A stretch of DNA of 64,000 nt from Macrostomum lignano (Eukaryota), in the NCBI GenBank assembly GCA_002269645.1, contig NIVC01000736.1:248001-312000 (forward strand). The letters run 5' to 3'. Both the position numbers and the translations under genes were made by a program. The notes beneath the pieces were generated by a model. The model was not told where the DNA came from. It ran no database searches and saw only the letters and a program-made list of their open reading frames with translations. Shown here in pieces: positions 12,201 to 16,625 of this stretch; the first letter of the stretch is position 1; every line of letters begins with the position of its first letter.

Positions 12201-15200
12201 CGGTTTGGGGTCACGGCAATGTCACGGATATAAAGCGCGGAGTATAAAACAAAGCCATCAGTTAGGAGGGTCATTCAACACCCTCAAACTCAGTTTCAGT
12301 TGCGGTCATGGCCTCAGTTTTAGTTGGGGTCATGGCCTCAGTTTCAGTTGGGGTCATGGCCTCAGTTTCAGTTGGGGTCATGGCCTCAGTTTCAGTTGGG
12401 GTCATGGCCTCAGTTTCAGTTGGGGTCATGACCTCAGTTTCAGTTGTCATGACCTCAGTTCAGTTGGGGTCATGACCTCAGTTTCAGTTGGGGTCATGGC
12501 CTCAGTTTCAGTTGGGGTCATGGCCTCAGTTTCAGTTGGGGTCATGACCTCAGTTTCAGTTGGGTCATGACCTCTGTTTCAGTTGGAGTCATGGCCTCAG
12601 TTTCAGTTGGGGTCATGACCTCAGTTTTAGTTGGGGTCATGACCTCAGTTTTAGTTTGCTTCAGGCTTCATGACCTGAGGCCTGGTGCTTGTGCTCACCC
12701 GAGACGAGAAGAAGGCTGAGAACTTGAGCATGCCGAAGGCGTTGGTGCAGATGGGCATGGTGTGGGTCTCCCGGCTCCAGGGAGCCCCGCCGAACCCGAC
12801 GGTCTTGGCTGGCGACCCGCTGATGGCGGGCAGCGGCCTGTAGATGTGGCTGCCGAAGTCCTTGCCGCAGCAGCAGAGCCCTGTCTCGTTGCTGGAAAAG
12901 AAAGCACGCAGTTTGTTAAAGTGCTCAATTTGCAGTCTCACAACACAAGCTCCAATATGTCTACAGATTTAAATCTTACAATGAAATTATAGCCTTGGAG
13001 TGCAAACTATAATCTGTTAACACAAACTTGCAACAGACTCAAAATCTTGCAACATAATTTTAATAACAGATTTAGAATCTTGCAACAGATTTCCAATCTT
13101 GCAACAGATTTCCAATCTTGCAACAGATTTCCAATCTTGCAACAGATTCAAAATCTTGCAACAGACTCAAAATCTTGCAACAGATTCAAAATCTTGCAAT
13201 AGATTAAAAATCTTGCAACAGATTCAAAATCTTGCAACAGATTCAAAATCTTGCAACAGATTCAAAATCTTGCAACAGATTCAAAATCTTGCAACAGATT
13301 TAAAATCTTGCAACAGATTCAAAATCTTGCAACAGATTTAAAATCTTGCAACAGATTCAAAATCTTGCAACAGATTTAAAATCTTGCAACAGATTTAAAA
13401 TCTTGCAACAGACTCAAAATCTTGCAACAGATTCAAAATCTTGCAATAGATTAAAAATCTTGCAACAGATTCAAAATCTTGCAACAGATTTAAAATCTTG
13501 CAACAGCTTTAAAATCTTGCAACAGATTCAAAATCTTGCAACAGATTTAAAATCTTGCAACAGATTCAAAATCTTGCAACAGATTTAAAATCTTGCAACA
13601 GATTTAAAATCTTGCAACAGATTCAAAATCTTGCAACAGATTTCCAAACTTGCAACAGCCGGCAACTCACTGTTCAACGAAGCTGCAGCACTCGATGATT
13701 TGAATGCGCCGGTGCTTGTAGAACTGGCTGCTCGACTTCAAAATAAAGGGCGATTTGAACGTTTTTGAGCTCAAATTTTTATTGATAGTTCAAATTCGGT
13801 AAAGTGTGCACAGCCGAGCGCTCACCCGCTGGTACTGGGCGATCAGATTCTGGACTCCGCTGGTGGGGTCGGCCATCTCGGCTGGGGTTCTGTCCTCCTG
13901 GCGGACCGGAGTTTGTTCAAAAAAATTATGCCTAGATCGCTGTGTTTTTCCAAAATTCCACGAATTCATCCCAAAATCAGAATTTATGCAAAAATCTTCA
14001 AAATTATCCTAAAAACACTAAGTTTATCCCCAAGTCACCAAATTAATCCCAATTTACTGAGTTTATCCCCAAGTCACCAAATTAATCCCAATTTACTGAG
14101 TTTATCCCCAAGTCACCAAATTAATCCCAATTTACTGAGTTTATCCCCAAATCACCAAATTTATCCCCAAATTGGTGAGTTTATCCCCAAATCACCAAAT
14201 TTATCCAAATTTACTGAGTTTATCCCCAAATCACCAAATTTATCCCCAAATTACTGAGTTTATCCCCAAATCACCAAATTTATCCCCAAATTACTGAGTT
14301 TATCCCCAAATCACCAAATTTATCCCCAAATTACTGAGTTTATCCCCAAATCACCAAATTTATCCCCAAATTACTGAGTTTATCCCCAAATCACCAAATT
14401 TATCCCCAAATTACTGAGTTTATCCCCAAATCACCAAATTTATCCCCAAATTACTGAGTTTATCCCCAAATCACCAAATTTATCCCCAAATTACTGAGTT
14501 TATCCCCAAATCACCAAATTTATTCCCAAATTACTGAGTTTATCCCCAAATCACCAAATTTATCCCCAAATTACTGAGTTTGTCCCCAAATCACCAAATT
14601 TATCCCCAAATTACTGAGTTTATCCCCAAATCACCAAATTTATCCCCAAATTACTGAGTTTATCCCCAAATCACCAAATTTATCCCCAAATTACTGAGTT
14701 TATCCCCAAATCACCAAATTTATCCCCAAATTACTGAGTTTATCCCCAAATCACCAAATTTATCCCCAAATTACTGAGTTTATCCCCAAATCACCAAATT
14801 TATCCCCAAATTACTGAGTTTATCCCCAAATCACCAAATTTATCCCCAAATTACTGAGTTTATCCCCAAATCACCAAATTTATCCCCAAATTACTGAGTT
14901 TATCCCCAAATCACCAAATTTATCCCCAAATTACTGAGTTTATCCCCAAATCACCAAATTTATCCCCAAATCACTGAGCTAATACTAAGCAAGATTATAC
15001 ATCAACAAAAGACCCTTATCTCAATACTAGAATAAAAGAATTCCACAAAAATGGACTGTCACGTCGCTGATATTAAATTTCGTCGACTACAGCTTCTCAG
15101 ATTATAAAAGCACCTGTCCAGCGTCGTATCTATGGACAACAAACCCGTTTCCATAGTTACTAGACGCCACAGAGTTCTGCAAGTTTCAGATGGGATTAAA

Positions 15201-16625
15201 AAAGTCAAACAGAAAATCTCTTGGACTGCAATTTTTTGTTGACAGCGGAGCAAGCGAATCCGCAGAAGCTCAACTGGCACCCAATGGGCTCGCGCCATGA
15301 ACAACTAATTAGAAGGAAGCTGCTGGCAAGGGGGCGCCAAAGGCGGCGCCAAACAAGGGAGCTAAGGGGATGGGCGCCAAGGGGGGCGACAAACAAGGAC
15401 GTCAAGGGGGGGGGGGGGCGCCGCCTCAGGGGCGCCAAAGGCGGCGCCAAACGGGGCGCCCAAACTACTGCAAAGGGCGCCATGTACTTTCTAAATCCGA
15501 TCGGATGCCCTCCGCCCAGCCCGCAGGCACCGACCAGGTTGTGGAGGCTCCAGTTCACGCCGTCGACACTGCACAGCTGAGCAACGCAGGCGGCTCCGGA
15601 CGCGGCCGCCAGGTGTCCAGGCGAGTTGCCATGGCGATCCCTGGCCGACACCTGGCCTGGCCGCCACTGGGTGAGCAGGCGGACGAGGAACGGATTGCCA
15701 AGGCGACAGGCCAGGTGCAGCGGGGTCTCACCAGCCTGAGGGTTGGAGATGAAGAGGGAAGTCAGGGAGGGGATTTCCTGACTGCCGGCCCAGCTGATTT
15801 GCTCCCAGAGGCTTAAAATTTCAAAGTCTCGGCCTTAAAACGGAATTTCTGCTTCAGGCTGTCTTTTTTGAGTTGAAGAAGAAAAATTTGATTGAATTTG
15901 AAATCAAATATTGCTATTGAATTTCTACGGCTTTGACTTTGTTGACTGACTACTGAAAAGCTCAGAACTCACTGCATTCAGCGGTGCGGAGCCGGAGTCG
16001 CCCCAGCAGTCTACAATGACCTGCACAGCCAGGTGGTTGTCAATGGCAACGGCGGCGTGCAGCAGTGTGCAGCCCTCGATTGCAGATTGGCCTGGCAGCT
16101 GCGGTGAGAGATGGGGGTTGGGGCTGGCAGACAGACAGACAGACAGACAGACAGACAGACAGACAGACAGACAGACAGACAGACAGACAGACAGACAGAC
16201 AGACAGACAGACAGACAGACAGACAGACAGACAGAGACAGACAGATAGACAGACAGAAAGACAGCACAGGCAGGAAGCCATCTCACGCGGATTAGCTGGG
16301 ACTCAAACGTCCAGGTCTCTAGCAGAGGGCTACCGCGCCAACCCTCGGCCAGTGCAGCCTCCGCTTTGTCCTCATCAGCGTCAGAGTCTTGCGCACCGGC
16401 AGCGGCCGCCTCTTCAAGGTCGGCAACCAGCAGGAGGTTGGCCAGCTCCTCAGCAGACGCGGCAGCCGCCGTGGCCTCCTGCAGCTCGGCCCGCAGCTCG
16501 GCGGTTCTCCCGGGCTGTTCGAGGAGGCCCAGCAGCCGCTGCAGCCCAGCACTCGGCTGCTGAAGCCTCCACCGCTGACCTCCATCGTCCGCGTCGCTGA
16601 GAGTCGCGTCTGAGACCGTCGACAT
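243..16625 (-). CDS. TRPM: TRPM-family cation channel with N-terminal ankyrin repeats (20 exons, about 1420 aa if the last exon is 243-283)
   Basis: Phase-consistent exons in transcription order: 16287-16625, 15973-16098, 15535-15735, 13826-13897, 13671-13735, 12699-12891, 12009-12180, 10690-10856, 10184-10407, 8801-9359, 7859-8011, 6802-7145, 6269-6491, 6025-6123, 5216-5557, 4395-4820, 3076-3271, 1304-1433, 382-578, 243(or 266)-283. TRPM-like motifs: [33 protein letters not shown] (SLOG-like), [31 protein letters not shown] (S4-S5), YFQTFGE (pore), [31 protein letters not shown] (S6/TRP box). The start codon and last exon are less certain than the core. Confidence 0.88.
595..950. repeat. ~32-bp AGATCT-rich intronic repeat
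   Basis: Unit GTAGATCTCTAAGTAGATCTAATCTCTGTCAT, degenerating rightwards. Confidence 0.9.
1497..2873. repeat. ~17-bp minisatellite (CCCTCAAACCCAGCACC)n
   Basis: Direct reading; fills a TRPM intron. Confidence 0.95.
3377..3875. repeat. 20-bp minisatellite (TACGTCTCTCAAGGGATTGC)n
   Basis: Direct reading. Confidence 0.95.
4030..4416. repeat. 38-44-bp repeat spanning the TRPM exon/intron junction at 4395
   Basis: Minus-strand unit GTGGTCATGATTCAGACCATG|GTGAGCACACGGGACAG, about 10 copies. Confidence 0.95.
4975..5160. repeat. Degenerate (GTAG/GCAG)n microsatellite
   Basis: Direct reading. Confidence 0.85.
5565..5988. repeat. ~22-bp minisatellite (GGGGTATTGCAGACTGGGTGAT)n
   Basis: Direct reading; intronic. 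Confidence 0.95.
7162..7687. repeat. 12-bp repeat (GGATCTGGTTTG)n
   Basis: Near-perfect array inside a GC-AG intron. Confidence 0.97.
8040..8800. repeat. (AACC)n microsatellite
   Basis: Near-perfect; begins at intron position +1 on the minus strand. Confidence 0.98.
9509..10144. repeat. 20-bp minisatellite (GAGAGTAGACACGAGAGGCT)n
   Basis: Direct reading. Confidence 0.95.
10414..10670. repeat. ~30-bp repeat (CAGAGAGTGACCTTCAGAAGGATTCAAAAA)n
   Basis: Direct reading; fills intron 10408-10689. Confidence 0.9.
10887..11941. repeat. 19-bp minisatellite (CCCACTCAGATCCCAGAAT)n
   Basis: Direct reading. Confidence 0.96.
12287..12655. repeat. 24-bp minisatellite (CTCAGTTTCAGTTGGGGTCATGGC)n
   Basis: Direct reading. 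Confidence 0.95.
13020..13658. repeat. 19-bp minisatellite (AAAATCTTGCAACAGATTC)n
   Basis: Direct reading. Confidence 0.95.
14020..14975. repeat. 40-bp (2x20) minisatellite TTTATCCCCAAATCACCAAA-TTTATCCCCAAATTACTGAG
   Basis: Direct reading; lies in the intron joining the ankyrin and TRPM modules. Confidence 0.96.
15535..16625 (-). CDS. Ankyrin-repeat exons (N-terminal module of the TRPM model, or alternatively a separate short gene)
   Basis: [29 protein letters not shown] and [16 protein letters not shown] are ankyrin TPLH-type motifs across three phase-0 exons. Confidence 0.8.
16127..16262. repeat. (AGAC)n microsatellite
   Basis: Direct reading. Confidence 0.95.

Follow-up and report, generated by a model that had tools for sequence, protein, structure and literature searches.

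Introduction

Canonical TRPM channels carry an MHR/SLOG N-terminus and lack the ankyrin repeats of TRPA, TRPN, TRPV and TRPC channels. Himmel et al. state that neither TRPM nor TRPS channels have N-terminal ankyrin repeats (PMC7306681), and a 2026 survey of TRPM domain gains and losses mentions neither flatworms nor N-terminal ankyrin repeats (PMC13143021). One flatworm channel departs from this picture: TRPM_MCLZ has been published with N-terminal ankyrin (or ankyrin-like) repeats, six transmembrane (TM) helices and a TRP helix (PMC10788528, PMC11731825, PMC12861061). TRPM_MCLZ, which is Smp_333650 of Schistosoma mansoni, is activated by meclonazepam and has been described as a three-exon gene whose product has no MHR1/2 SLOG region and no C-terminal enzyme domain (PMC11731825). 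Here we analyze a gene of the flatworm Macrostomum lignano in which ankyrin exons would be spliced in frame onto an otherwise complete TRPM2-like channel, SLOG domain included. The gene lies in a 64,000-nt window (assembly GCA_002269645.1, contig NIVC01000736.1, positions 248,001 to 312,000 of the forward strand), and all coordinates below count from the first letter of this stretch. An original prediction made from the letters of the window had set the ankyrin exons against a general absence of ankyrin repeats in TRPM channels; with TRPM_MCLZ published, that absence stands as the usual description of the family and falls as a universal one.

The window gene shares the N-terminal ankyrin repeats of TRPM_MCLZ but has a SLOG domain and at least 20 exons, and its relatives have a NUDT9-homology domain (NUDT9H), features that set it apart from TRPM_MCLZ as that channel has been described. 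Membership of the TRPM_MCLZ group was rejected on the SLOG domain and the exon number. Identity with TRPM_PZQ was also rejected, on the indirect grounds of where the acidic residue of the TRP helix lies in the relatives and which residue it is. This residue is E1495 in M. lignano TRPM_PZQ and D in trematode TRPM_PZQ (PMC9910428); it lies near position 1305 in the M. lignano relative PAA85706.1, and the Clonorchis relative has E at that site.

TRPM2-type channels, including those of Nematostella (6co7), human and zebrafish and the choanoflagellate TRPM2 chanzyme, have the SLOG domain, MHR3/4, the pore FGE motif and the TRP helix in common with the window protein. They have no ankyrin repeats ahead of SLOG, however, and Nematostella TRPM2 (nvTRPM2) has only 32 residues there. 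TRPA, TRPV, TRPC and TRPN channels resemble the window protein in placing a cytoplasmic N-terminal ankyrin domain before a six-TM TRP pore, but their repeats lead straight to pre-S1 without any SLOG/MHR region, whereas the window protein has a short module of four repeats set on a complete TRPM N-terminus. The channel body showed no homology to TRPA, TRPV, TRPC or TRPN exceeding that to TRPM.

Domain architecture of the predicted product

We read the locus as one minus-strand gene whose ankyrin exons are probably cis-spliced, from 15535 to 13897, onto a TRPM2-like channel, and from sequence comparison we put the probability of this reading at about 0.87. The gene starts at an ATG at 16625 and runs past position 1, the end of the window, leaving outside the part beyond the TRP domain, where the C-terminal coiled coil that assembles TRPM tetramers would be expected. 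Our hand-extended model of 20 exons (Table 1) comprises 4279 nt and 1426 codons with zero stops, bearing out the original prediction that the frame entered by the ankyrin exons continues through the TRPM exons. Exons 1 to 4 are in phase 0 at both ends, and the exon 5 acceptor is also in phase 0. An LLETW motif closes exon 1 and, by alignment, is common to the paralogue PAA85706.1.

A Pfam search of the 1426-residue product returned, in order, Ank_2 (residues 126-211), LSDAT_euk, the SLOG domain (332-474), the TRPM2-like domain (698-940) and Ion_trans (1109-1370), in agreement with the Ank-TRPM architecture that had been proposed from the letters alone. With the N-terminus searched by itself, the Ank_2 match reached E=3.6e-15, and Ank_2, Ank_3 and Ank all scored above the Pfam cut-offs for an ankyrin repeat domain. 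LSDAT_euk scored 83.6 against a cut-off of 25.7 (E=2e-23), and the TRPM2-like domain, which represents MHR3/4 (PF25508), was covered over its full profile (E=3.2e-34). The six-TM pore region matched Ion_trans with E=1.2e-13, and the TRP-helix sequence YWTLQRY aligned to VWKFQRY of nvTRPM2. Motifs of the form G-x-[TS]-P occur at residues 157, 191 and 224, and their spacing of 34 and 33 places the TP of exon 4 exactly in register with the earlier repeats. The capping repeats of five homologues also match the exon 4 peptide with no gap in the alignment, and the claim that this exon completes an ankyrin motif is thereby upheld.

The best matches of the channel are all of TRPM2/3/4 type. The top solved relative was nvTRPM2 (6co7, E=4.7e-87), which aligned in one stretch to query residues 250-1406 from chain residue 33 onward, indicating that a complete TRPM body begins at exon 5 and that residues 1-246 are an addition. 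In S2 and S3, the stretches IEEAKQ and WNLMD line up with E893/Q896 and N918/D921 of 6co7, while the TRP-helix residue E1110 is replaced by D; in the published structure these five residues are Ca2+ ligands of nvTRPM2. Ankyrin repeats (Ank_2 at 126-211 and the capping repeat) do precede SLOG here, where a TRPM channel is expected to have none. Membership of the TRPM family stands, since the departure concerns an absence and not a positive hallmark.

Table 1. Exons of the Ank-TRPM gene model, with the repeat-filled intron 3, by position in the window.
Feature	Position	Strand	Length	Content
Exon 1	16625-16287	-	339 nt	Start codon; 113-residue acidic, Ala-rich N-terminus
Exon 2	16098-15973	-	126 nt	Ankyrin repeat 1; donor GTGAGT
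Exon 3	15735-15535	-	201 nt	Ankyrin repeats 2 and 3 (GETPLHLAC..., GNSPGHLAA...); ends ..VNWSLHNL, donor ctg/GTCGGT
Intron 3	15534-13898	-	1637 nt	Mostly a 40-nt minisatellite (13992-14978) and GGCGCC-rich repeats
Exon 4	13897-13826	-	72 nt	Fourth (capping) ankyrin repeat; acceptor ccgccag/GAGGAC, donor GTGAGC
Exon 5	13735-13671	-	65 nt	First TRPM2-homologous residues (Cys-rich pre-MHR, ..IIECCSFVE)
Exons 6-10	8801-12891	-		Remaining Cys-rich segment and SLOG/MHR1-2 domain
Exons 11-16	5216-8011	-		MHR3/4 (Pfam TRPM2-like domain) and pre-S1 region
Exons 17-20	382-4820	-		S1-S6, pore YFQTFGEL, TRP helix YWTLQRY; exon 20 ends at 382

The junction between exons 3 and 4

The splice at this locus was judged by comparison with homologues. 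The junction of the original prediction, a phase-0 join of the 15535 donor to a 72-nt exon at 13826-13897, proved correct to the base when the boundaries were located by script. Across this junction (marked below by a slash where mapped) the multiple alignment is gapless, with HNL/EDRTPAEMA of the window protein matched by PDS/SGRSALDCAR in Mlig003066, the gene of PAA85706.1, and by PDH/YNKTPYNLAT in Paragonimus, RDW ESKDPLEISF in Clonorchis, TDS TDRTPLNIAM in Fasciola and VDH ADKLPVDFCV in Spirometra. The gapless alignment of the capping repeat spans six proteins from four flatworm lineages.

Exon mapping at the homologous loci found a phase-0 intron at the same position in the PAA85706.1 gene (LALPDS/SGRSALDCA, donor GTGAGA) and in the Paragonimus gene (QIPDH/YNKTPYNLA, donor GTAAGT). 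The intron between exons 2 and 3 is conserved as well (APLNA/AGETPLH in the window gene, ELSNS/RRELPIH in PAA85706.1, KPSG/EGLTPLH in Paragonimus), and all three genes thus carry a phase-0 intron ahead of repeat 2 and another ahead of the cap. In Mlig003066, a single exon (L001 4771-5055) corresponds to window exons 4, 5 and 6 and encodes the capping repeat together with the TRPM N-terminus to GNTAQ, showing that the fusion exists there without any splice, joined in the DNA. The Mlig_3_7 annotation that contains this gene is based on RNA-seq (StringTie/TACO and de novo assembly), with transcripts split wherever a trans-splice or poly(A) site had been mapped by experiment (PMC5730564), and the fused mRNA of the paralogue is thus experimentally backed.

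The exon 3 donor itself is weak. Non-consensus donors make up 5 of the 20 in the gene model, including GTTGGT (exon 10), GTTTGA (exon 13) and GTCTGC, and those of exons 10 and 13 are obligatory for any TRPM product. Just 65% of M. lignano donor regions carry the GT[GA]AG motif (PMC8629364); with both figures in view, GTCGGT is not exceptional. A scan of intron 3 found no GT[GA]AG, and no phase-compatible GT from exon 3 to the read-through stop matches the consensus better than the one at 15535. A single other in-phase GT, at 15652, matches it equally well but was rejected because its use would delete 39 residues of repeats 2-3. The next in-frame option, at 15469, was rejected for the 22 repeat-derived residues that it would add. 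Both choices conflict with the gapless alignment.

Relatives in other flatworms

A HMMER scan of 1.84 billion cluster representatives with an M. lignano paralogue model (P0002, 39% identical to the window protein) as query, followed by Pfam scans, recovered three more representatives in which ankyrin repeats precede SLOG. PAA85706.1 (Mlig003066.g1, from M. lignano Mlig_3_7) combines Ank_2, LSDAT, TRPM2 and Ion_trans with a C-terminal NUDT9H that matches human NUDT9 (1q33, E=5.5e-20), and is one of three near-identical copies (PAA85706.1/PAA49471.1/PAA76106.1). The same domains are found in KAG5447154.1 of Clonorchis sinensis, which clustered with Opisthorchis viverrini XP_009171463.1, and in KAF8568535.1 of Paragonimus westermani, a fragment. 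The Clonorchis orthologue has a PF25969 NUDT9_N match and a gene span of 124 kb, and the Paragonimus gene has at least nine exons in its first 420 residues. When the ankyrin repeats were kept in a profile search, generic ankyrin proteins crowded out even the query's own family. With the Ank part taken off the Clonorchis protein, a word-based search added members with precomputed Ank, LSDAT and TRPM2 Pfam matches from O. felineus, Fasciola hepatica, Fasciolopsis, P. skrjabini miyazakii and the cestode Spirometra. The Ank-SLOG-TM architecture, for which a search of other flatworms had been suggested earlier, is therefore found in flukes, a tapeworm and M. lignano paralogues: the ankyrin head stands before SLOG in models from nine parasitic species and in a second and third M. 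lignano paralogue.

A profile of the Ank module gave one end-to-end N-terminal match in each relative, starting only at repeat 2 in the Paragonimus westermani fragment, and no match in the other ~140 TRPM representatives. The nearest of these ~140 Ank-free representatives are TRPM2-type channels of a mollusc (octopus), a cnidarian (jellyfish) and vertebrates. The window protein conforms to the plan of this group, in which one N-terminal module of three ankyrin repeats and a cap leads into the Cys-rich segment and then SLOG. BLASTP alignments with the window protein are single and colinear from the Ank module through the TRP helix, with 32% identity to Mlig003066 (window residues 101-1411 against 70-1323), 28% to Clonorchis (84-1413 against 21-1284) and 27% to Fasciola (121-1414 against 101-1308). 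The identity is thus 27-32% over ~1300-1400 colinear residues for full-length relatives; Spirometra gave 23% over ~900 residues. In the AlphaFold model of the Paragonimus orthologue, four helix pairs (residues 59-186, predicted local distance difference test (pLDDT) 72-86) are followed by a disordered linker and then the SLOG fold, and the capping segment homologous to exon 4 forms one of these helix pairs (pLDDT ~72-83).

The Mlig003066, fluke and tapeworm proteins have their parts in the same order as the window protein, namely a short N-terminus, three ankyrin repeats and a cap, the Cys-rich segment, SLOG/MHR1-2, MHR3-4, six TM helices and the TRP helix. Compared with Mlig003066, the window gene is a separate paralogue with two extra introns, and the linker from cap to channel is a few residues long in the window protein versus ~80 disordered residues in flukes. 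Mlig003066 lacks most of the Cys-rich pre-MHR segment (no ECxxF...CxCG). The shared architecture and the single colinear alignments point to a distinct, conserved flatworm subfamily. The original prediction had left open whether the gene is a lineage-specific chimera or belongs to a TRPM-like subfamily; the conserved architecture, the colinear BLASTP alignments and the shared intron favor the subfamily. Judged by sequence, the window gene is a new paralogue of this flatworm Ank-SLOG-TRPM2-like subfamily. Its members are deposited as 'hypothetical protein' or 'TRPM2', and a description of the Ank plus SLOG architecture was not found in the searchable literature.

Weighing the alternatives

Several observations weigh against a single cis-spliced gene. 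The donor GTCGGT deviates from GT[GA]AG at +3 and +4, the pyrimidine tract of the exon 4 acceptor is poor, and an AATAAA lies 3' of the stop of the exon 4 read-through frame. Exon 4 carries an in-frame ATG (13875-13873), a possible alternative start giving MADPTSG, and ~30% of M. lignano genes are trans-spliced to a leader that ends in ATG (PMC8629364); with the phase-0 acceptors of exons 4 and 5, this makes an Ank-less channel conceivable as well. The protein collection searched contained no transcript-based protein of the window gene, just error-ridden M. lignano models from the older ML2 assembly, and the gene may be weakly expressed. These models are its closest matches there, and fragments of two of them agree exactly with translations of the window. 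The parasite orthologue models are gene predictions, and the Ca2+ dependence, the role of the Ank module and the presence of NUDT9H are inferred.

Some of these points would also suit a locus with two products, an upstream gene that encodes ankyrin repeats only (exons 1-4, or exons 1-3 plus read-through) and a conventional TRPM gene that starts from MADPTSG or from a spliced leader at exon 4 or 5, possibly within an operon. About 15% of M. lignano genes are in operons and repeat-adjusted intergenic distances peak near 100 bp (PMC8629364), while intron 3 measures only ~500 nt once its repeats are subtracted; the phase-0 acceptors, the weak exon 3 donor and the AATAAA after the exon 4 read-through stop all fit such an arrangement. 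We nevertheless consider it improbable, because the exon 4 capping repeat keeps the register of repeats 1-3 and is conserved in homologues, and because two homologous genes share the phase-0 intron at the junction. The paralogue exon runs from the cap into the TRPM N-terminus with no stop between, and the paralogue transcript is still single even though its annotation was cut at mapped trans-splice sites (PMC5730564). The frame that reads through from exon 3 after 15535 is made of tandem repeats, with no AATAAA near its stop, and the fused architecture recurs in nine parasitic species and at a second M. lignano locus. A MADPTSG start or a trans-splice acceptor was accordingly rejected for the main product on the conservation evidence, and an additional Ank-less isoform, trans-spliced or started at MADPTSG, is possible. 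No Rfam family and no spliced-leader (SL) RNA gene was found within the 64-kb window.

There is also a slim chance that we are looking at a duplicate gene gone silent or in decay, in which an ancestral GT[GA]AG donor of exon 3 mutated to GTCGGT, leaving the Ank exons poorly joined and the gene with little or no expression. The M. lignano genome is highly duplicated, and the Mlig_3_7 annotation has 72,846 genes and yet no transcript-based model of this one (PMC5730564); the equivalent intron has consensus donors in both the paralogue and Paragonimus. Decay is hard to reconcile, however, with 1426 codons in 20 exons without a stop or frameshift, with Pfam domains that are all above threshold, and with intact Ca2+-site, pore and TRP motifs, and obligatory introns elsewhere in the gene have non-consensus donors too (GTTGGT, GTTTGA, GTCTGC). 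That the in-frame join is a coincidence or an artefact of exon picking, with a fortuitously ankyrin-like exon 4 peptide, is close to inconceivable: one third of random exon pairs are phase-compatible and the N-x4-TP-x3-A motif is short, but the conserved intron position, the gapless cap alignment and the colinear BLASTP matches effectively refute it.

Proposed function and significance

In a single cis-spliced gene, exon 3 would be joined to exon 4 across an old, conserved phase-0 intron, and exon 4 would complete an ankyrin domain of three repeats and a capping repeat (approximately residues 120-246). The Cys-rich/SLOG (MHR1/2) region would then start at exon 5, a few residues past the ankyrin domain. 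The product is predicted to be a tetrameric, Ca2+-dependent, non-selective cation channel with the Ank module on the outer edge or face of the cytoplasmic MHR1/2 layer. There the module may provide a platform on which partner proteins or neighboring subunits dock or exert regulation, as in TRPA, TRPV, TRPC and TRPN. A NUDT9-homology domain probably lies beyond the window end, as expected from its presence in the Mlig003066 and Clonorchis relatives.

These results show that flatworms keep a whole subfamily with a canonical four-repeat ankyrin domain ahead of an otherwise complete TRPM2-like channel, against the usual description of TRPM. Flatworm TRPM channels are the targets of praziquantel and meclonazepam. 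The ankyrin head gives a third flatworm TRPM lineage a flatworm-specific structural appendage, found in liver and lung flukes but in none of the closest TRPM relatives examined outside the flatworms. This matters for target selectivity and for channel regulation or anchoring, and the transgenic-tractable M. lignano offers a harmless laboratory model for testing the function of the ankyrin head. For annotation, the locus illustrates how a real domain fusion can go unnoticed behind a weak GTCGGT donor and an intron with 1.6 kb of repeat-filled sequence.

More tentatively, and with the odds against it, Ank-SLOG-6TM-NUDT9H channels might form an old, undescribed TRPM2-like subfamily that predates the split of Macrostomorpha and Neodermata and gained its ankyrin head by phase-0 exon shuffling, with TRPM_MCLZ as a derivative that lost SLOG and NUDT9H. 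Such a history, if true, would overturn the ankyrin-free rule for the TRPM/TRPS lineage and give flatworm TRPM drug targets a common origin.

Repeats and neighboring features

Nearly all introns of the gene (1-16625) are filled by a mini- or microsatellite array of their own, with periods of 4-40 nt and up to 190 copies (for example 8041-8801, 13992-14978, 1497-2877 and 10888-11942). A (GGTT)n array starts right at the exon 10 donor (AAG/GTTGGT), so that the repeat itself provides the splice donor. After exon 17, a 38-nt tandem repeat of ~10 copies (4030-4417, minus strand) re-copies the last ~21 nt of the exon (GGTGGTCATGATTCAGACCATG) along with its GTGAGC donor, creating a series of duplicate donors downstream of the real one. 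After exon 11, a GC-AG intron (ACG/GCAAGT, 7853-7858, minus strand) is likely, because the sole in-phase GT donor would remove the conserved SLDLYRS (TRPM LEELYN) of that exon. An 18-nt tandem repeat of ~15 copies (16659-16924) lies directly upstream of the start codon, in the expected position of the promoter or 5' untranslated region.

Elsewhere in the window, neighboring loci at 37479-38848 (-), 28396-29358 (-), 62178-62843 (-) and 57908-58378 (+) include a casein kinase II beta (PF01214, 3.7e-38), a U-box protein (1.8e-11), a BtpA-family protein (4.7e-42) and a reverse-transcriptase fragment of a retroelement (RVT_1, 1.2e-10). An uninterrupted open reading frame of 1108 residues at 43453-46779 (-) had no Pfam match. 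By eye, a unit of ~190 residues (…SCxxPSSSGxAFIxxFNxFExxFL…) occurs three times within it, and a long EQERQ/KREQ repeat comes after these copies.

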